Below, piece after piece: positions 7,669-64,000 of a DNA stretch of 64,000 bases. The notes below the pieces were generated by a model that was given only the letters and a program-made list of their open reading frames with translations, was not told the DNA's origin and made no database searches. Position 1 is the stretch's first letter. Every line of letters begins with the position of its first letter. The stretch is from Chrysemys picta bellii (lineage: Eukaryota), in assembly GCF_011386835.1 (NCBI RefSeq), contig NC_088802.1, positions 2,108,001 to 2,172,000 of the forward strand, given 5' to 3'. A program made the translations under genes and the position numbers.

Positions 7669-10600
7669 TCAGCGTCGCTGGGCGTGGTTGGACGTGTGTT
7701 CCCTGCCTCCTGGGGTCTGGACTGTAATCTCTGCGTAGTGCAGGCTCTCGCTCTCCACGGCCTCCCGGCTGCCCTGGCCCTGTGTTGGACAGACAGACAG
7801 TGAGGACGCCGTCACCCCAGATCTGGTCTTTTAATTCTGGCCAATCTAGGCCGCTCCCAGGGAGCAAATCCCACAGTGTTACCCCAGATTGGAGGGATTG
7901 GGAGCCAGGACTCCGGGGTTCTTTCCGAGCTCTGGGAGGGGAGTGGGGTCTAGTGGGGTAGAGCTGGGGGCTGGGAGCCAGGACTCCTGGGTTCTCTTCC
8001 CAGCTCTGGGAGGGGAGTGGGGTCTAGTAGGGTCTGGCAGCCAGGACTCCTGGGTTCTCTCCCCTCACTGTATTGTACCAGTCTTTATTGGCATTCGGAG
8101 ACCAGACCCAAGCACTGTCTGGAACAAGGCCCAACCTGCATTGTCTCACCTTCAGCTGCTGTCGGCGAGGCTGCGAGTGGGGCGGCGCTGCACAAGAAGG
8201 GAGAAGAAAGGAACGTTAAAACAGAGGAGTGAGAGAGAGAGTCTGGGGTGAAGAGGGAAGCTGCCAAGATCTAGGGACGGGGGGGAGAAGGAGGGCGAAG
8301 AAAGGACGGGGTGGGGGCGTGGATATATGGACAGACAGCCCAGCATGGACCACAGCGGACAGACGGCCGCTCGGGTGTGTTCAGTAGCAAGGGCCCTGGC
8401 CCATGGGGCCAGGAGGTTAGCGGGGGGAAGGCTCCGGTTCGGTACCTTGGCGTCTCTTCAGGAGGAGGGTGGCCGCCAGGCCAAGGAATAGAAGGAGCCC
8501 CAGGGCGATGGCGACCTGGTACAGGAGCTCCCAGGAGCAGCTCCCTGCGGGAGCAGGTTCTTCACCTGGACGATGGAGAGGACTGTTAGGGGATTCTCAG
8601 CCCCTTGAGCCAGCCAGTCCCCTGCCCTGCGGCCAGAGAGGGGGAAGGCCCCGTGCCCCCATTCCCCACCTCACCTGTGTCACTCTGGTTTCTCCCCATC
8701 ACCTGCAGCTCGGTGCCTGCTCCTGTCCCGCTCTCTCCCTGGTGGATGCTGATCTGACACTGGTAGAGACCAGAGTCCCGCTGCTCCAGCTCCGACAGGG
8801 TCAGCATGGCCTCCCCTTTCTGGAGCAGATCCAGGTGGGACACATTGAGCCGCCCGTTGTAGAAGGGATGGGCAGAATCCAGCACGACTCCAGGCGCTCT
8901 TGTCCAGGTCGCTCTGGCCATGCTGCCCTGTCTGTTCTCGAAGGAGCAGTTGAGTGTCACGGTCTCGCCAGGGGACGCTCGGAGGACAGCGGGGCTCTGA
9001 AGGACTGTGAGACCTTCGTGAACCAGGGCAATAAACATTATAGCAACAAAGGAAAACTACGACGAATGGTATCGAGACACGCCCCAGCCGCCCGAAACCT
9101 TAGCAGCACGGAGATAAGAAGCTTAGCTGGAAAAAATTGTGTGTTCCTGTCCACCTTGCTACTGCTCACAACACTGTCGATAACACATTGCACAGGACTT
9201 TCACTTCCCCCTCCAACAGATACCCCACATCAGCACTGCTATGTGCACGGCAGATGCTCACAGAGACGTTAGCCGTAAAATCACTCAGGACAGTTACGTC
9301 CAAGGCAGACTGTGCAGAGTTGCAAAGGGATCTCACTAGACTGGGTGACAAAATGGCAGATGAAACTCAAAGGTACTAAATGCAAAGTCAGGCCCACTGG
9401 GAAACATAATCCCAACTACACATATAAAATGATGGGGTCTAACTTAGCTGTTACATCTCAAAGAGATCATGGATAGTTCTTTGAAAACATCCGCTCAATG
9501 TGCAGCGGCAGACAAAAATCAAACAGGATGGTAGGAACCATTAGGAAAGGAACAGATAATAAAATGGAAAATATGATAATGCCACTAAATAAATCCAGGG
9601 TACGCCCACACCTTGAATAGTACGTGCCGTTCTGGTCACCCCATCTCAAAAAAAGATACATTAGAATTGGAAAAGGTAGGGAAAAAGGCAACAAAAATGA
9701 TTAGGGGCATGGAACAGCTTCCATATGAGGAGAGACTAAAACACTGGGACTGATCAGCTTAGAAAAGAGATGAGTAAATGGGGGAATATGATAGAGCTCT
9801 ATAAAGAATGGTGTGGAGAAAATGACTAGGGAAGTATTAACTACCACTTCACATAACACAAGAACCAGGGGTCACCCGATGAAATTAACAGGCAGCAGGT
9901 TTAAAACAATCAAAAAGAAGTACTTCTTCACACAACACACAGTCAACCTGTGAAACTCACTGCCAGGGGATGTTGTGAAGGCCAAAAAGGAATTAGATAA
10001 GTTCCTGGAGGATAGATCCATCAATGGCCAAGATGGTCAGGGATGGAACCCCATGCTCTGGGTGTCTCTAAATCTCTGACTGGCAGAAGCAGGGACTGGA
10101 CGACAGGGGATGGATCACTTGATGATTGCCCTGTTCTGTTCATTCTCTCTGAAGCATCTGGCACCGGCCACTGTCGGAAGACAGGATACTGGGCTAGATG
10201 GACCATTGGTCTGACCCAGTATGGCCGTTCTTATGTTCTTGCAGGAGGACTGCAAGTCACACTACTAAAGAAAAGAGGCTGCTCCCTAAGGCAGAGAGGA
10301 ACAACTCACCCCACATTAGTTTAGGCTGGGTCTCTGCAGACTGACTCTGATCACATGGAGACCCCTCGGCTGCAGGCAGGCCCAGGAGACCCGCTTACAA
10401 ATTAAAGTGGCAGCTTGTCAGTTGAACACTTTTAAGTACACCGCAAACACATGCCTCGACTTTATACAATTTGTGCTCCAAGCTACAGGGTGGAAATGTT
10501 TCCCGATGGAACGTTTGTCCCTTGGAAAATGCCGTTTCATTGAGATGACGACAACTTGTTTAGCAATGGGGTGGACGGCACGAAAAAGCGTTTTGATAGG

Positions 10601-50102: not shown

Positions 50103-51175
50103 CTGTCCCGCCCGAGGGAGGGAAAGAGAGGAGCCTTGGAGCGGCATGGGCCAGGGAGGAGGATAAGGAGGCGGGGCCACGGAGTGGGCGGGGCTAAGGA
50201 GCGGGAGGGAGGGGCAGGGAGCAGGAGTGTGGCTAATAGGAAAGCGGGCAGGGAGGGGGAGGGGCTATTGGGGAGATGGGAGGGGCTAATGAGGGACGGG
50301 GAGGGGCCATTAGCGGGGAGGGGCAGGGAGGAGCTATGCAATAGGGGAGGGACTAATGGGAGAGGGACGGGCAGGCAGGGGTGGGGAGGGGCCTTAGGGA
50401 TGGAGGGGAAGGGAGGGGGAGGGACTATGGGGATGGAAGGGGGCTAATGGGAGAGGCAAGGGCAGGGAGGGGGAGGGGCCATTGGGAGAGGAAGGGGCTA
50501 TAGGGAGGGGGATTGGCCATTGGGATGGAGGGGGAAGGGCCATTGGGACACAGGGATGAGGGGGCAGTTGGGGGGGCTCTGCCCTCCCTTCTGTTCTGTC
50601 TCTTCCCCCTTCCCCCCATATCCCCCCGTCACTCCGGTGCAGCCCCTGGGGGGGGTGCCAGGCCCAGCCCCACAGGTCAGAGGGGGCAGCTGTGGGCAGG
50701 CGGAGCCCCTGGGTGGGGTGAAGAGGAGGACACTGGCCTGTAATTTTGGGGCCATGAATTCAAGGTCTAGGTGCGAGCCTGGTTTGTCTGTGGGTGAATC
50801 GCCCTGAGCGGGGGGCGCTGTCCCCTGGCAGTTAGGGTTGGTCCCATTGCCCCAGGGCAGCGCTAGGGGCTGTGCTGGGAGCAGCAGTACACAGGCTGGA
50901 GGAGATCAGGGCCGGCTCCAGGTTTTCTGCTGCTCCAAGTGGCAAAAAAAAAACCCCAAACCATCAGCGGCAGCTCAATCGAGCCGCTCCATTCTTCGTC
51001 GGCAGTTTGGCTGCGGGTCCTTCGCTCCCTCTCTTCCTCTTCGGCGGCACTTCGGCGGCAGCTCAAAGAGGAAGAGAGGGACTGAGGGACCTGCCGCCGA
51101 AGACCCAGGTGGGCCGCCCCAGTAGCGGATGGAGTGCCGCCCCTTTGTATTGGCCGCCCCAAGCACCTGCTTCCA

Positions 51176-52541: not shown

Positions 52542-53055
52542 AGGGGTCGGCAACCTTTCAGAAGTGGTGTGCCAAGTTCACTGTCATTTAAAAGGTTTCC
52601 CATGCCAGTAATACATTTTAACGTTTGTAGAAGGTCTCTCTCTATGTCTATATTATATAAATAGACTATTGTTTGTATTTAAAGTAAATAAGGTTTTTAA
52701 AATATTTAAGAAGCTTCATTTAAAATCAAATTAAAATGCAGATCTTATCAATTTAGTGTGATCCTTGCCTGGGATCCTTGTCTGGGGTTCCAGCCACCAG
52801 CCCCGCTCAGCCCACTGCCGGTCTGGGGTCCAGCCACCAGCCCCGCTCAGCCCACTGCTGGTCTGGGGTCCAGCTACTGGTCCTACTCAACCCACTGCCG
52901 GTCTGGGATTCCATCCACTCAGCCAGCAGCAGGCTGAGTGGGCCGGTGGCGGGCTGAGCGGGACCGGCGGGGGGGCTGAGCGGGACCGGCGGGGGGGCTG
53001 AGTGGCTCAGTCCGTTGCCAGTCTGGGATGCCGGCAGCACTCAGCCTGTTGCTGC
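52542..53055. mobile_element. Probable non-autonomous hAT element fragment
   Basis: Begins CAGGGGTCGGCAACCT and contains internal CAGCCCCGCTCAGCCCACTGCCGGTCTGGGG repeats. No second TIR identified. Confidence 0.45.
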
Positions 53056-56995: not shown

Positions 56996-59900
56996 ATGGA
57001 GCAGCTGCCAGCCCTGAGCCCCGTCCTCTGCATCCTCCTCTTCATCCCCACCTGGGCAGCAGGTACTAATTTAACGTGTTCATCCAGCCACCTACCCCAT
57101 CTCTAGATCCATCTCTGTCTTTCTGTCCATCTGCCCCAAGCCTAGATCCATCTCTGTCTGTCCTTCTGTCCATCTGCCCCACGCCTAGATCCATCTCTGT
57201 CTGTCCTTCTGTCCATCTCCCCACGCCTAGATCCATCTCTGTCTGTCCTTCTGTCCATCTGCCCCAAGCCTAGATCCAGCTCTGTCTGTCCACCTTGTAG
57301 CCCAGAGGGCTAACCTGCTGGCTTGCTTTATTATGTTCTGCCTTTATTTATTGGTTTGTTTTGGTATATTTGCCTTGTACGTTTGCATTGGATTATGTTA
57401 TTATGTTTGGCTGTAACGGGTCCTACAGGCCTGTATCCTGTATGTTTAGCTTCAGCAAGTGAGCATCTGTACGGTTAAGGGGGCTGGTGAGCTTAGGCTC
57501 AGATATATGGCCTAACCGATACCCTTTTAGAGTTTGGGGAACTAGACATGTTTATCTAAGAAACTTGGGACTCCACACAGGACACGGCAGGAATGTGGAA
57601 GTAACGACCGGAAACCAGATTGGGAAAGAAATAACAGGTTTGAGAATGAGCCAATTGGCATTAACATGTGTGACTACACTAGCCTATAGAATAAGTGCAC
57701 CCCAGTATGATGTGGGTGAGGAAGTTAGATTTGGGCACAGAAGGTTGGGTACTAGCATGAATATTCAAGATATTGTTGAGATCCTATAGGAGGGCAACCC
57801 GCCATGTGCAGGCAGCTTCGTCTTCTTCAGCTTTTGAGTTTCTCCACTGTCTATTGTCAACTTCGCTACTCAGCATCTGACCCTTCAGTTCTATTGTTCA
57901 CCCTCAGTCTCGAGCATCGTCGGACCCATTTGGCAGGCCAGGGACAGGCTGGTCCGTTGTCTCTTATCACCAGGTGCCCCTGTGAGGGTGCTAATCTAGG
58001 AAGCTTTGGTAAGGGCTGATGAGACAGGTCCCCCCAGAGCTGTGTTATTCCCTTGTGACGCTTTGGAAGCTTTTTCACTTATTTTAATAAGTCTCTATGG
58101 CTGCATTTTCTCCTCAGCCTGTGTGTCCTTGTCATCCGCCTCGAAGGTCCTTTACAAGATGTTGAACTCACGGCCTAGTCCATCTAGCCCAGTATCCCGT
58201 CTCTGACAGTGGCCGGTGCCAGATGCTTCAGAGGGAATGAACAGAACAGGGCAATCATCAAGTGATCCATCCCTGTCGTCCAGTCCCTGCTTCTGCCAGT
58301 CAGAGGTTTAGAGACACCCAGAGCATGGGGTTCCATCCCCGACCATCTCGCCATGGATGGATCTATCCTCCAGGAACTTATCTAATTCCTTTTTGAGCTC
58401 AGTGATACTTTTGGCCTTCACAACATCCCCTGGCAGTGAGTTTCACAGGTTGACTGTGTGTTGTGTGAAGAAGTACGTCTTTTTGCTTGTTTTAAACCTG
58501 CTGCCTGTTAATTTCATCGGGTGACCCCTGGTTCTTGTGTTATGTGAAGTGGTAATTAATACTTCCCTTGTCATTTTCTCCACACCATTCTTTATAGAGC
58601 TCTATCATATTCCCCCCTTTACTCATCTCTTTTTTAAGCTGATCAGTCCCGGTGTTTTAGTCTCTCCTCATATGGAAGCTGTTCCATGCCCCTAATCATT
58701 TTTGTTGCCTTTTTCCGTATCTTTTCCAATTCTAATGTATCTTTTTTTGAGATGGGGTGACCAGAACGGCACGTACTATTCAAGGTGTGGGCGTACCCTG
58801 GATTTATTTAGTGGCATTATCATATTTTCCATTTTATTATCTTTTCCTTTCCTAATGGTTCCTACCATCCTGTTCGATTTTTGTCTGCCGCTGCACATTG
58901 AGCGGATGTTTTCAAAGAACTATCCATGATCTCTTTGAGATGTAACAGCTAAGTTAGACCCCATCATTTTATATGTTTCCCAGTGGGCCTGACTTTGCAT
59001 TGATCACCTTTGAGTTTCATTTGCAGTTTCGCTGCCTGGTCTAGTGAGATCCATTTGCAACTCTGCAGAGTCTGTCTTGGACTTACCTGTCCTGAGTGAT
59101 TTTACGTCTAACGTCTCTGTGAGCATCTGCCGTGCACATAGCAGTGCTGATGTTGGGTATCTGTTGGAAGGGGAAGTGAAAGTCCTGTGCAGTGTGTTAT
59201 CGACAGTGTTGTGAGCAGTAGCAAGGTGGACAGGAACGCACAATTCTTTCCCCTTAGCTTCTTATCTCCGTGCTGCTAAGGTTTCGGGCGGCTGGGGCGT
59301 GTCTCGATACCACTCGTCGTAGTTTTCCTTTGCTGTTATAATGTTTATTGCCCTGTGTGACGAACTGGGCCTGTTCTCACTGTGGTGTGTGAATGCTGAC
59401 AGGGGAGTGTGCTGGGATAGTCTGCATTGGAGGATGGGATCTGCCCGGGGGCGCATTCCTGAGCTTGTAACATGAGAACCCAGGAAGGGGTTGAAGGCCA
59501 GGTGACTCCTGAGCCCGGGAAACTGAAAAAAGGCTGTGGGAGGGGTCGCTGAAGGCAGTGTGCTGGAAGCAGGCTGGAGAGATGGCTGGGAGGCAGAGAT
59601 GGCTCTGACCTCCCAAGGGGGGCTGGGCTGGGATGCCCGGGGACCCCAAGATGGACCTAACTGAGGGGGTCCCTGTTGTCAGTGCCTGCAAGACCTGTCT
59701 TGGACTGTATTCCTGTCATCCAAATAAACCTTCTGCTTTACTGGCTGGCTGAGAGTCATGGTGAATCGCAGGGAGCCAGGGGTGCAGGGCCCTGAGTTCC
59801 AGTTGTCACGGAGTATTGGGGAACTCAGGGCCCTGCACCCCTGGCTCCCTGCGATTCACCATGACTCTCAGCCAGCCAGTAAAGCAGAAGGTTTATTTGG

Positions 59901-62900
59901 ATGACAGGAATACAGTCCAAGACAGGTCTTGCAGGCACTGACAACAGGGACCCCCTCAGTTAGGTCCATCTTGGGGTCCCCGGGCATCCCAGCCCAGCCC
60001 CCCTTGGGAGGTCAGAGCCATCTCTGCCTCCCAGCCATCTCTCCAGCCTGCTTCCAGCACACTGCCTTCAGCGACCCCTCCCACAGCCTTTTTTCAGTTT
60101 CCCGGGCTCAGGAGTCACCTGGCCTTCAACCCCTTCCTGGGTTCTCATGTTACAAGCTCAGGAATGCGCCCCCGGGCAGATCCCATCCTCCAATGCAGAC
60201 TATCCCAGCACACTCCCCTGTCAGCATTCACACACCACAGTGAGAACAGGCCCAGTTCGTCACATCTCTCCCCCCTTCGAGACCGAACTGAGCAGGGTCA
60301 CTTTAGCCAGTGACCTGGGGAAGTTCGAACCTACCCCCGTTCCCATGGATGCCCCCGCATCCCTCCCATTCCTTGGTGAGAATTACACCAGGCCCCTCCA
60401 GTTTCACGCCCCCCCTTAGGTTGGGGTTGCTTGATGGCACTCGCAGTTCGCATGTGGGAAGGTTTATGCGGCCTGTGCCCTTTTCCCACCCCCATACCTC
60501 TGGGGCTCCAACTGGGCTGTGGTCTTCTCCCAGCGCTCCAGTCTGGAGGTCTGTGCTTTGGGCTCTCTTGGTTTAGAGCCGCCCTTTTTACCTTGGCCAC
60601 CCTCCGAAAAGGCTCCTCTATGCTGGGCAAGGGTCCTAAAGCTGTCTTCCCCTTGTCCCAGGCCTTCCTCCCCCTCTGACAGGGGTCACAGGATCCGCAG
60701 TACTGTCGGACAGTAACAAAGACCCCAGGCCAGTAAAAGCTCCGTAGCAGCCTCTGCTGGGTACGCCAGGTTCCCTGGTGCCCTGCGAGGGGAATGTCAT
60801 GGGCCCGGCACAGCAGCTGGCGGCGATACTTCTGGGGTACCACCAGCTGCCTCCTGATCCCCCCTGACTCCATTTTCCCTGGGGGAGCCCATTCTCGGTA
60901 CAGGAACCCCTTCTCCCACAGGAACCTTTTCCGGCCACCTCGTCCCATGGTCTGTACCGCATTGAGGTCGGCCAGGTCCCTTATCTTCCGCAAGGAGGGA
61001 TCTCTCTGTAACTCGGCCTGGAACTCAGCAGCTGGGACGGGGATGGCCACCTGCTCTTTCTCACCCGCTGGGTCCGAAGCTGCAGCCTCCCTGAGCCGCG
61101 TCCCTGGGCGTTCCCTCCCCACCAGGTTAGGGTCCTGCACCTCAGGCAAGGCACCCCCCCCAAGGCCAGGGCGCAGTGCCCCTCGCCGGCTCTGACCGCG
61201 GGTCACAACTAAGGCGGTCTGGGGGCTGCTTGGCCAGTCCTCTAGGTCCCCCCCCATCAACACCTCAGTGGGCAAATGGTGGTGCACTCCCACGTCCTTG
61301 GGGCCCTCCTTGGCCCCCCATTTCAGGTGTACCCTCGCTACGGGAACCTTGAATGGGGTCCCGCCCACCCCGGTCAGGGTCAGGAAGGTGTTGGGCACCA
61401 CCCGATCTGGGGCCACCACCTCGGGCCGGGCCAGTGTCACCTCTGCGCCCGTGTCCCAGTAACCATAAACTTTCTTCCCATCCACCTCCAGGGGAACAAG
61501 GCACTCGCTCCGCAGGGACAGCCCCGCGCCAACCCTGTAAACGGAGAACTTTGAATCCGGGGCATCTGACCCCCCAGAGAAGCTAGCCTGGGGCTCTCCT
61601 CCCTCCTTAGCAGGTGGTACTCTGCCAGCCCCCCTTCCCTGGGAATGCTGCCTCTCGCCGGGCTGGGTCTCTACCCAGTCAACCCTCTGTGGGTTCGGCC
61701 TGCTCAGTCTGTCCCTGAGCCTGGGGCACTGGGCCCGTATGTGGCCCTTTTGGCCACAGTGGTAGCAGCCCATGTCCCATGGGACCCCTTGAGTGGGTCG
61801 GATGGTCCTGATGCCGGATGTTCCCCTCTGATGGGGTTTTTCTGTATTTTCCCACGGGGAGGTCCCATGGTGACTCTCTCTCTGCGTTGTGGTGGGATTG
61901 CTCCTTTGGGACTCCTCCCTTTTATCTCCTGACCGGCTCTTTACGAACTCATCGGCCAGCCGGCCTGCCTGTCGCGGGTTCTCTGGCTTTCTGTCCACCA
62001 ACCACAGCCTCAGGTCAGATGGGCACCGCTCATACAGTTGCTCCAGTACCAGCAGTTTGACCAGGTCCTCCTTCGTCTGGGCCCCATCAGCCCACTTGCT
62101 GGCGTATCCTTCCATGCGGGCGGCTAGTTGCAGATATGAGATCTCAGGGGTTTTATCCTGACTCCGGAACCTTTCCCGGTACATCTCAGGCGTCAGCCCA
62201 AACTCTCGTAGCAGGGCCTTTTTGAATAGTTCGTAGTCCCCTTTCTCTGCCTCTTCCAGTTGGCGGTACAATGCCACGGCTTTGGGGTCCAGTAAGGGGG
62301 TAAGGACCCGGAGTCTGTCCGCGGGATCAACCCGGTGCAGCTCGCAGGCCGTCTCAAAGGCCTCCAGGAAGTCATCCATGTCCTCCCCCTCCTTGTATGG
62401 GGCCATGATGCACTTATCAAAGCTCCGTGCAGTCCTGGGTCCCCCCTCACTCACCGCAGCCGGGGGTTCGCTGCCCTTCAATCTCGCCAGTTCCAGGTCA
62501 TGCTGACGCTGTCTCTCATTCTCCTCCCGTTCATGCTGATGCTGTCTCTCTTTCTCCTCCCGTTCACGCTGATGCTGTCTCTCTTTCTCCTCCCGTTCAC
62601 GCTGATGCTGTCTCTCTTTCTCCTCCCGTTCACGCTGACGCTGTCTCTCTTCATGCTGTCTCTGTCGTTCCCGATCCTCCAGCTCTCTCAGTTTTAGCTC
62701 TTTCTCCCATTCCAGCCAATTCCGCTCCACGGATGCCGAACGTCGCCGGGAGGCTCCTCTGCTGGCCGGCGGGCTTCGCCGGGGGGACCCCCTGCTGGCC
62801 GGGGGGATCACGGCGCCTTCGGTATTTGCTGGGCTCCTCCCCACCCTTCCCCTAGGCATAGGAAGGAGGGGTCTCGGGAAGCCCTCAGCAGCCGGCTGAC

Positions 62901-64000
62901 CACTCCCAGCCGGGACAGACACTGGTGCCTGCGCTGCATTTGCCAGGCTGCTTCCCTGAGACACAGGGATCAGTTCATTCGCGCGATCTTCCGCCTCCAG
63001 CTGGGCGATGAGCTGTTCTTTGGTGAGCCTCCCAATGCGCAGCCGCCTCTGCTTGCACAGCTCCACCAGGTCGCTCTTAAGCCGCTTGGCATACATCTTC
63101 CTGCTGGCCACTCACCGGCCTGTGTGCTCACAGCTCCCCACAGTTCCCAGGGGGACCCCTAGTGTGCCAGCCCTTCTCGAGGTCACCACCTCTCTGCCAG
63201 GGTCGAGCTGCAGACTCCTCCGCCCCTGGGACCACTCGCTGCGATCCCACGGGGGACCCTGTTACTGCAAAAGTCCTTCTCGCTGGTCACACACTCCCAG
63301 GGGTAATAACCGTCTCTCTCCCACTCTTCAGCTGGCCTGGTCCCCGTCAATCCCCCTTCGTTTTACTGCTCCCCAGTCACTTACTGCAGGAAGCGCCGTC
63401 CACGGGGTGCAGTAGATCCCGCCGCTGCCACCAGTTGTCACGGAGTATTGGGGAACTCAGGGCCCTGCACCCCTGGCTCCCTGCGATTCACCATGACTCT
63501 CAGCCAGCCAGTAAAGCAGAAGGTTTATTTGGATGACAGGAATACAGTCCAAGACAGGTCTTGCAGGCACTGACAACAGGGACCCCCTCAGTTAGGTCCA
63601 TCTTGGGGTCCCCGGGCATCCCAGCCCAGCCCCCCTTGGGAGGTCAGAGCCATCTCTGCCTCCCAGCCATCTCTCCAGCCTGCTTCCAGCACACTGCCTT
63701 CAGCGACCCCTCCCACAGCCTTTTTTCAGTTTCCCGGGCTCAGGAGTCACCTGGCCTTCAACCCCTTCCTGGGTTCTCATGTTACAAGCTCAGGAATGCG
63801 CCCCCGGGCAGATCCCATCCTCCAATGCAGACTATCCCAGCACACTCCCCTGTCAGCATTCACACACCACAGTGAGAACAGGCCCAGTTCGTCACACCCT
63901 GGTTCACGAAGGTCTCACAGTCCTCCAGAGCCCCGCTGTCCTCCGAGCGTCCCCCGGCGAGACCATGACACTCAGCTGCTCCTTCGAGAAGAGACAGGGC
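56996..64000 (+). CDS. NCR3-like: NKp30/NCR3-like receptor gene 5 (partial, runs off the window), with a Gypsy insertion in intron 1
   Basis: Leader exon 56996..57062 [23 protein letters not shown] exon starts at 63912: [30 protein letters not shown]. Signalling type and intactness cannot be seen. Confidence 0.7.
57090..57290. repeat. 43-bp VNTR in intron 1 of gene 5
   Basis: About 5 copies of the same unit. Confidence 0.85.
58175..59085 (-). mobile_element. CR1 LINE fragment in intron 1 of gene 5
   Basis: Inverted paralog of 9303-10248. Confidence 0.85.
59356..63896 (-). mobile_element. Young non-autonomous Gmr1-type Gypsy LTR retrotransposon with an extra inverted LTR
   Basis: 5' LTR 63436-63896 and 3' LTR 59804-60264 are both 461 bp and identical by eye. 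Inverted LTR copy 59356-59800. PBS TGGTGGCAGCGGCGGGATC matches the recalled vertebrate tRNA-Leu 3' end with about 1 mismatch. PPT AAGGGGGGAGAGA. TSD CCCTG at 59351-59355 and 63897-63901. Confidence 0.95.
60331..63096 (-). CDS. Gypsy Gag-protease-truncated integrase polyprotein (no integrase core, RT or RNase H)
   Basis: Open frame from the ATG at 63096. Contains a coiled coil with [11 protein letters not shown] repeats, a SCAN-like capsid ([24 protein letters not shown]), [18 protein letters not shown], protease WDTGA, and then the integrase zinc-binding H..H..CDPC directly, which is the Gmr1 order. It breaks after EEPFRRVA. Confidence 0.9.
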   Translation of the reverse strand: MYAKRLKSDLVELCKQRRLRIGRLTKEQLIAQLEAEDRANELIPVSQGSSLANAAQAPVSVPAGSGQPAAEGFPRPLLPMPRGRVGRSPANTEGAVIPPASRGSPRRSPPASRGASRRRSASVERNWLEWEKELKLRELEDRERQRQHEERQRQREREEKERQHQREREEKERQHQREREEKERQHQHEREENERQRQHDLELARLKGSEPPAAVSEGGPRTARSFDKCIMAPYKEGEDMDDFLEAFETACELHRVDPADRLRVLTPLLDPKAVALYRQLEEAEKGDYELFKKALLREFGLTPEMYRERFRSQDKTPEISYLQLAARMEGYASKWADGAQTKEDLVKLLVLEQLYERCPSDLRLWLVDRKPENPRQAGRLADEFVKSRSGDKREESQRSNPTTTQRESHHGTSPWENTEKPHQRGTSGIRTIRPTQGVPWDMGCYHCGQKGHIRAQCPRLRDRLSRPNPQRVDWVETQPGERQHSQGRGAGRVPPAKEGGEPQASFSGGSDAPDSKFSVYRVGAGLSLRSECLVPLEVDGKKVYGYWDTGAEVTLARPEVVAPDRVVPNTFLTLTGVGGTPFKVPVARVHLKWGAKEGPKDVGVHHHLPTEVLMGGDLEDWPSSPQTALVVTRGQSRRGALRPGLGGGALPEVQDPNLVGRERPGTRLREAAASDPAGEKEQVAIPVPAAEFQAELQRDPSLRKIRDLADLNAVQTMGRGGRKRFLWEKGFLYREWAPPGKMESGGIRRQLVVPQKYRRQLLCRAHDIPLAGHQGTWRTQQRLLRSFYWPGVFVTVRQYCGSCDPCQRGRKAWDKGKTALGPLPSIEEPFRRVAKVKRAALNQESPKHRPPDWSAGRRPQPSWSPRGMGVGKGHRPHKPSHMRTASAIKQPQPKGGRETGGAWCNSHQGMGGMRGHPWERG

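Follow-up and report, generated by a model that had tools for sequence, protein, structure and literature searches.

In a 64,000-nucleotide (nt) stretch of the genome of the painted turtle Chrysemys picta bellii (assembly GCF_011386835.1, contig NC_088802.1, positions 2,108,001 to 2,172,000 of the forward strand; hereafter the window), a long terminal repeat (LTR) retrotransposon carries three LTRs inside one target-site duplication (TSD), the third of them inverted. We read this structure as the single integration of an aberrant double-stranded complementary DNA (cDNA) from a non-autonomous Gmr1-like Ty3/gypsy element, made by an error of reverse transcription, and we put the probability of this reading at about 70%. 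Its components differ in strength. That the composite arose before integration and entered the chromosome through two U3 (unique 3′) ends is strongly supported, while the exact route by which the composite was assembled is something we infer.

The insertion unit occupies positions 59356-63896 (4541 bp) and is accompanied by a 5-bp duplication; the 64-kb window contains 0 N. The element lies on the minus strand, where its 5′ LTR (63436-63896) and its 3′ LTR (59804-60264) are both full length (461 bp) and are separated by a body of 3171 bp. Both begin with TGTGAC and end with GTGACA, end motifs for which 0 matches are expected in shuffles, and an AATAAA stands at LTR position 368. The extra copy, on the plus strand at 59356-59800, corresponds to LTR bases 1-445 (U3-R-U5), over which it matches both other copies at 100% identity; the final 16 LTR nt, CCAATACTCCGTGACA, are missing from it. 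Together with the 3′ LTR it forms an inverted repeat whose 445-bp arms are 100% complementary. The arms are separated by a 19-nt spacer (59801-59819), in which AGT is joined to the complement of the 3′ LTR's terminal 16 nt. A preliminary description of this DNA had reported just this arrangement, namely that beyond the 3′ LTR the element continues with ACTGG and an inverted LTR short of its last 16 nt, with arms of about 445 bp and a 19-nt spacer, and it is borne out base for base.

The ends of the unit are as unusual as its interior. U3 base 1 of the 5′ LTR abuts the right TSD copy, and U3 base 1 of the inverted LTR abuts the left one; that is, both outer ends are U3 ends. Only two U5 ends occur in the window, and both are internal to the unit. 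Furthermore, all three LTR copies are 100% identical, with zero differences over 1367 LTR positions. Because of this identity, and with assumed rates between 2e-9 and 0.5e-9 per site and year, the insertion is younger than roughly 1-4 million years.

A single pair of TSDs encloses the entire three-LTR unit: CCCTG at 59351-59355 on the left and CCCTG at 63897-63901 on the right. For an empty-site test, a target without the insertion was rebuilt by joining the left flank (with one CCCTG) and the right flank, and the remainder of the window was searched with it. The joined flanks align unbroken across the reconstructed junction to four paralogues in the window (90-94% identity). Three of these lie on the plus strand, with CCCTG at 36370-36374 (within 35991-36473), 40472-40476 (within 40087-40575) and 45148-45152 (within 44764-45251), and one lies on the minus strand, with CCCTG at 9024-9028 (within 9408-8925, reversed). 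At the target position, all four empty sites read tttattgCCCTGgttcacgaag with one CCCTG. Given a single CCCTG at four empty sites and an exact TSD, the whole unit entered in one integration: the 4541-bp unit is one precise insertion, and host DNA was neither lost nor moved. The preliminary description had drawn the CCCTG duplication around the whole structure and had proposed that the composite was made before integration and inserted by two U3 ends. The sequence and the empty sites uphold the first of these claims, and the precise TSD with its four empty counterparts upholds the second.

The same evidence disposes of two independent or nested insertions, that is, of a solo or truncated LTR that happens to lie beside a normal element. 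Nested LTR insertions are common; here, however, there is one TSD pair, the empty sites hold a single target and the three LTRs are identical. Moreover, the inverted copy has no separate TSD of its own, an outcome for which the preliminary description had allowed: next to the inner U5 end (59804) stands CCAGT and not a repeat of the right flank. A double insertion is refuted by the single TSD and by the empty sites with their one target, and we give it practically no credence.

The junction between the 3′ LTR and the inverted LTR is where the history of the molecule can be read. Past the 5′ LTR the element continues with ACTGGTGGCAGCGGCGGGATC, in which 2 nt (AC, 63434-63435) precede the putative primer-binding site (PBS), the 18-mer TGGTGGCAGCGGCGGGAT starting with TGG (63416-63433, minus strand). 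The PBS is presumably Leu-like, with a 17/18 match to the 3′ end of vertebrate tRNA-Leu; no tRNA gene was found in the window. Past the 3′ LTR comes ACTGG (59799-59803, minus strand), the same 5 nt that follow the 5′ LTR at 63431-63435, and then AACTCAGGG, which is the inverted LTR. The direct repeat of the two minus-strand LTRs is therefore 466 nt long, i.e. the LTR plus ACTGG. On the sense strand the junction reads ...GTGACA, then AC, then T followed by GG, and then AACTCAGG... The GG at 59799-59800 is common to the junction and to the inverted arm, a 2-nt microhomology (GG/CC), so these two bases are doubly assignable and only ACT is unambiguously non-LTR.

The conserved CA is followed by AC, the two bases that integrase normally trims off before joining. 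They are retained at the junction, and for this reason the inner U5 end was never processed by integrase. An autointegration product was also considered and is ruled out, as it would need an integrase-processed CA-3′OH end where AC has been kept. The next T, possibly TGG, matches the start of the PBS (the complement of the tRNA CCA end), which is consistent with a plus strand that read 1-3 nt, a few bases, into the tRNA primer. In HIV (human immunodeficiency virus) cDNA, PBS/tRNA-primer bases are likewise kept at unprocessed U5 ends, and imprecise removal of the primer by RNase H is blamed (PMC5618025). Copying into the tRNA primer had been part of the preliminary description. The match of T/TGG to the PBS start agrees with that proposal, but it comes down to 1-3 bases, because the GG belongs to the inverted arm as well.

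With the ends and the junction in hand, explanations that place the event elsewhere can be weighed. An assembly artefact would mean that a palindromic or fold-back chimeric read was built into the assembly and that the true locus holds a normal two-LTR element. Long-read libraries are known to yield perfect palindromes as an artefact, and the structure is read from one assembly. Yet such a read gives no reason for the fold-back to end at U3 base 1 and to be followed by an exact TSD matched by four empty sites, or for the palindrome to be centred at U5+AC+TGG. A normal element would also need a U5 end at the left TSD, and none is there, both U5 ends in the window being internal. In addition, the arms are short (445 bp) and long reads span them easily. 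We consider an artefact very improbable.

The exact borders also argue against a rearrangement after integration, in which a template switch during replication or a fold-back would have made an inverted duplication of the 3′ LTR within a normal insertion. Microhomology-mediated inverted duplications do occur in genomes (PMC10766186, PMC4689423). In this case, however, the duplication would need to have U3 base 1 as its exact starting point and to fill precisely the place between the TSD and the U5 end, with a filler that matched the PBS junction by chance and without any gain or loss of host DNA. A later rearrangement is, in our judgement, highly unlikely.

How, then, could a composite with two U3 ends have formed in the course of reverse transcription? 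The molecule that integrated would have had the order 5′ LTR, body, 3′ LTR, AC, T(GG) and inverted LTR bases 445 to 1. In the first step, the plus strand at the right end would copy 1-3 nt of the tRNA primer, or of what was left of it, and would end in ...GTGACA-AC-TGG-3′, an end expected to be a poor substrate for integrase. In the second, its terminal GG would pair with the 3′-terminal CC of a plus-strand strong-stop DNA that had been left incomplete and ended in ...GAGTTCC-3′. In the third, reverse transcriptase (RT) would extend both 3′ ends. The first strand would run off its strong-stop template at the 5′ end of the latter, giving a second perfect U3 end; the run-off would fall exactly at U3 base 1 because this 5′ end is set by cleavage at the polypurine tract (PPT). 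In the fourth, integrase supplied in trans would join the two U3 ends to the target. When checked by sequence, GG/CC pairing followed by two-way extension reproduces both strands of the observed junction, with synthesis running 5′-to-3′ on both.

Each of the demands that this route makes on the enzymes can be compared with what is known or with the element itself. RTs, including that of Tf1 (Ty3/gypsy-type), clamp and extend strands that are held together by two complementary 3′-terminal bases containing G or C, and cellular polymerases show no such extension from two 3′-terminal bases (PMC3035444). The two attachment (att) ends of the turtle element are nearly alike (TGTGACG vs TGTCACG), and on this account the integration of a U3/U3 pair is plausible, as integrase acting in trans should accept it. 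It is also plausible that no use could be made of the over-long U5 end and that the molecule became fit for integration only by acquiring its new U3 end.

The preliminary description had favoured a related route, in which the plus strand snaps back upon itself at the GG/CC microhomology. The 2-nt overlap is indeed present, but an intramolecular route is not demonstrated by it, and the pairing of two plus-sense LTR strands fits better. Snap-back gives the same letters with extra steps. It yields a closed hairpin, and its copy would pass U3 base 1 into the PPT (GAAGGGGGGAGAGA, 60265-60278, minus strand, directly upstream of the 3′ LTR) unless the plus strand were nicked at the PPT/U3 border. Furthermore, the bottom strand begins with plus-sense U3-R-U5 and would still need a second plus-sense strand. 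At the free plus-strand end, no fold was found that places GG onto CC, the folding being no better than that of shuffles (z = -0.58). This favours a 2-nt contact held by an enzyme over spontaneous fold-back, and a spontaneous hairpin at this end was rejected on the same grounds.

Host enzymes could have built a similar composite by microhomology-mediated end joining before integration. That is, a full-length cDNA with an unprocessed and slightly over-long U5 end would have been joined through GG/CC to an inverted, broken LTR fragment of a second cDNA, and the two U3 ends would then have been integrated. A 2-nt microhomology with a 16-nt loss on one side is typical of such joining, and host repair does act on unintegrated retroviral cDNA, as deletions and insertions at 2-LTR junctions show (PMC5618025). 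Nevertheless, end joining calls for two molecules, one broken inside its U5 and the other still carrying an RT error (the extra T/TGG), and it leaves unexplained a partner of strong-stop size that starts exactly at U3 base 1. We regard this alternative as unlikely, though it deserves to be kept in mind.

Several points weigh against the RT-error route that we prefer. With identical LTRs, intramolecular and intermolecular events, and the work of RT and that of a host polymerase or ligase, are indistinguishable. The read-in to the tRNA primer amounts to 1-3 nt, for which the chance of a coincidental match is about 1/4 to 1/64, and a 3-nt TGG/CCA match was present 2 nt further on and was left unused. 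The U5 boundary (...GTGACA) was placed by the TG...CA rule and by the start of the PBS. To these is added the use of a single assembly, already mentioned.

The identity of the element explains why integrase is taken to have come from elsewhere. An open reading frame (ORF) of 926 amino acids (aa) at 60331-63111 (minus strand) encodes gag, protease and the N-terminal part of integrase (IN), with a SCAN domain of the gag capsid type, a zf-CCHC domain, a DTGA protease motif and an Integrase_H2C2 domain; a domain search of this ORF did not find an RT domain. In full-length relatives from sea turtles (P0007 and P0009), gag is followed by IN (H2C2, rve, SH3), RT and RNase H in this order, with H2C2/rve at positions ~650-850 and RVT/RNase H at ~1130-1490. 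A gag with SCAN, and IN placed ahead of RT in the relatives, therefore indicate a Gmr1-like arrangement. The window protein is colinear with P0007 and P0009 up to aa 839 (about 60595, the start of the IN core), where homology ends. Judging from this alignment, the copy is a deletion derivative of a Gmr1-like Ty3/gypsy element from which the IN core, RT and RNase H have been deleted. Because of this loss the element is non-autonomous and must have been mobilised in trans, with integrase and the other missing functions supplied from outside. The annotation of Chrysemys picta bellii contains several proteins of the same cut-down architecture (86-95% identity; one cluster has 14 sequences), and the deletion form is therefore a multi-copy subfamily.

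Some further features of the element can be recorded here. Past the breakpoint (~aa 839), ~87 aa stay open at 60331-60594 without homology to the IN core of the relatives, and this ORF tail looks like read-through of the former 3′ region. Inside the gag ORF, a 33-bp tandem repeat (four units, 85-92% identity, 62492-62656) encodes a reiterated stretch of the protein, at which P0007 has about 20 fewer residues. The extra LTR at 59356-59800 faces into the element, antisense to gag.

The target of the insertion is a tandemly duplicated receptor gene, an NKp30-like paralogue. The window holds five paralogues of the intron end and V exon (88-98% identity), one of them inverted: 8925-9408 (minus strand), 35991-36473, 40087-40575, 44764-45251 and the interrupted copy at 58956-59355 and 63902-64000. 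The immunoglobulin (Ig) V-type exon of the latter lies ~10-19 bp downstream of the insertion (frame from 63899; region 63897-63935). The insertion falls between the pyrimidine-rich tract of the intron and the likely splice acceptor, and as a consequence normal splicing of this NKp30-like copy may be lost. Upstream of the element, the window contains G-rich degenerate repeats of ~54 nt (50168-50525), a 40-bp tandem repeat of three units (52785-52904) and a 43-bp tandem repeat of four units (57091-57291).

If our reading is right, the locus preserves a clean in vivo example, fixed in the germline, of a plus strand reading into the tRNA primer, of strand joining on a 2-nt overlap and of the concerted integration of two identical (U3) ends. 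As a rule, these three events are observed only in vitro or in circles that lead nowhere. In practical terms, LTR annotation tools that assume direct LTRs will mis-call such copies. Should the event recur in the Gmr1-like family, the junctions would document, as a natural collection, the errors that a vertebrate retrotransposon makes in reverse transcription. From the standpoint of the host, the 445-bp palindrome with its 19-nt spacer is a potential fragile site and a potential source of double-stranded RNA (dsRNA), directly ahead of an immune-receptor exon. In particular, if the promoter of the extra LTR is active, its transcripts would open with R-U5 sequence forming a hairpin with the 3′ LTR and would then run antisense through the body, another possible source of dsRNA.

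A broader and more doubtful idea is that U3/U3 integration is a recurrent side pathway of the painted-turtle Gmr1-like family, in which cDNAs with a spoiled U5 end are rescued when RT copies a second plus-sense LTR strand, and that the resulting LTR palindromes could seed small-RNA silencing of the family. Were this speculation true, the palindromes would put the LTR promoter antisense to the element and yield hairpin or antisense RNA from which small-RNA silencing could start, in a manner likened to the maize Mu killer locus.

Among known systems, the closest in overall structure are the three-LTR complexes with one TSD that form before integration and are documented in grasses (PMC1950507; rice survey, bioRxiv 10.1101/452573). 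Like the complexes of Sabot & Schulman 2007, the turtle unit has three LTRs, a single TSD round the whole, near-identical outer LTRs and a pre-integration origin, which in the grasses is put down to abnormal template switching or recombination before integration. In the grass complexes, however, all LTRs are direct, two internal domains share the middle LTR and the outer ends are the normal U3 and U5. In the turtle unit, by contrast, the third LTR is inverted, is 16 nt short and adjoins the 3′ LTR, there is one internal domain and both outer ends are U3. The LTRtype paper on complex LTR elements contains none of the words inverted, palindrome, or opposite or reverse orientation, and in an incomplete search of the literature we found no paper that describes an integrated LTR element bounded by U3 on both sides and bearing a third LTR in inverted orientation. 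Exact matches to the U5-AC-PBS junction were likewise absent from collections of metagenome and viral contigs, in which turtle DNA is not to be expected.

At the level of the junction, the likeness is to retroviral 2-LTR circles, which also show an unprocessed U5 end followed by PBS-derived bases (PMC5618025). Such circles are dead ends in infected cells, whereas the faulty turtle end is buried in a germline-integrated element, where it is joined to an inverted LTR. The GG/CC junction also fits the geometry of the RT clamp and of end-to-end template switching (Oz-Gleenberg et al., PMC3035444); the clamp was shown in vitro with oligonucleotides, without an in vivo product, and its role in the turtle junction would be by extension from that work. 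With respect to family, the SCAN-like gag and the CCHC knuckle are those of Gmr1-like Ty3/gypsy elements (PR-IN-RT-RH, SCAN-type gag), although the turtle copy, unlike its full-length relatives, is without the IN core, RT and RNase H.

In concept, the nearest analogue would seem to be twin priming of LINE-1, reportedly described by Ostertag and Kazazian in 2001, in which a second 3′ end is said to prime during reverse transcription and to leave a partly inverted insertion within one TSD. LINE-1 is a non-LTR element, however, and its twin priming takes place during target-primed reverse transcription on chromosomal DNA, with no LTRs and no integrase. Altogether, the turtle unit belongs with the complex LTR insertions made by errors of reverse transcription and is not a new type of element.

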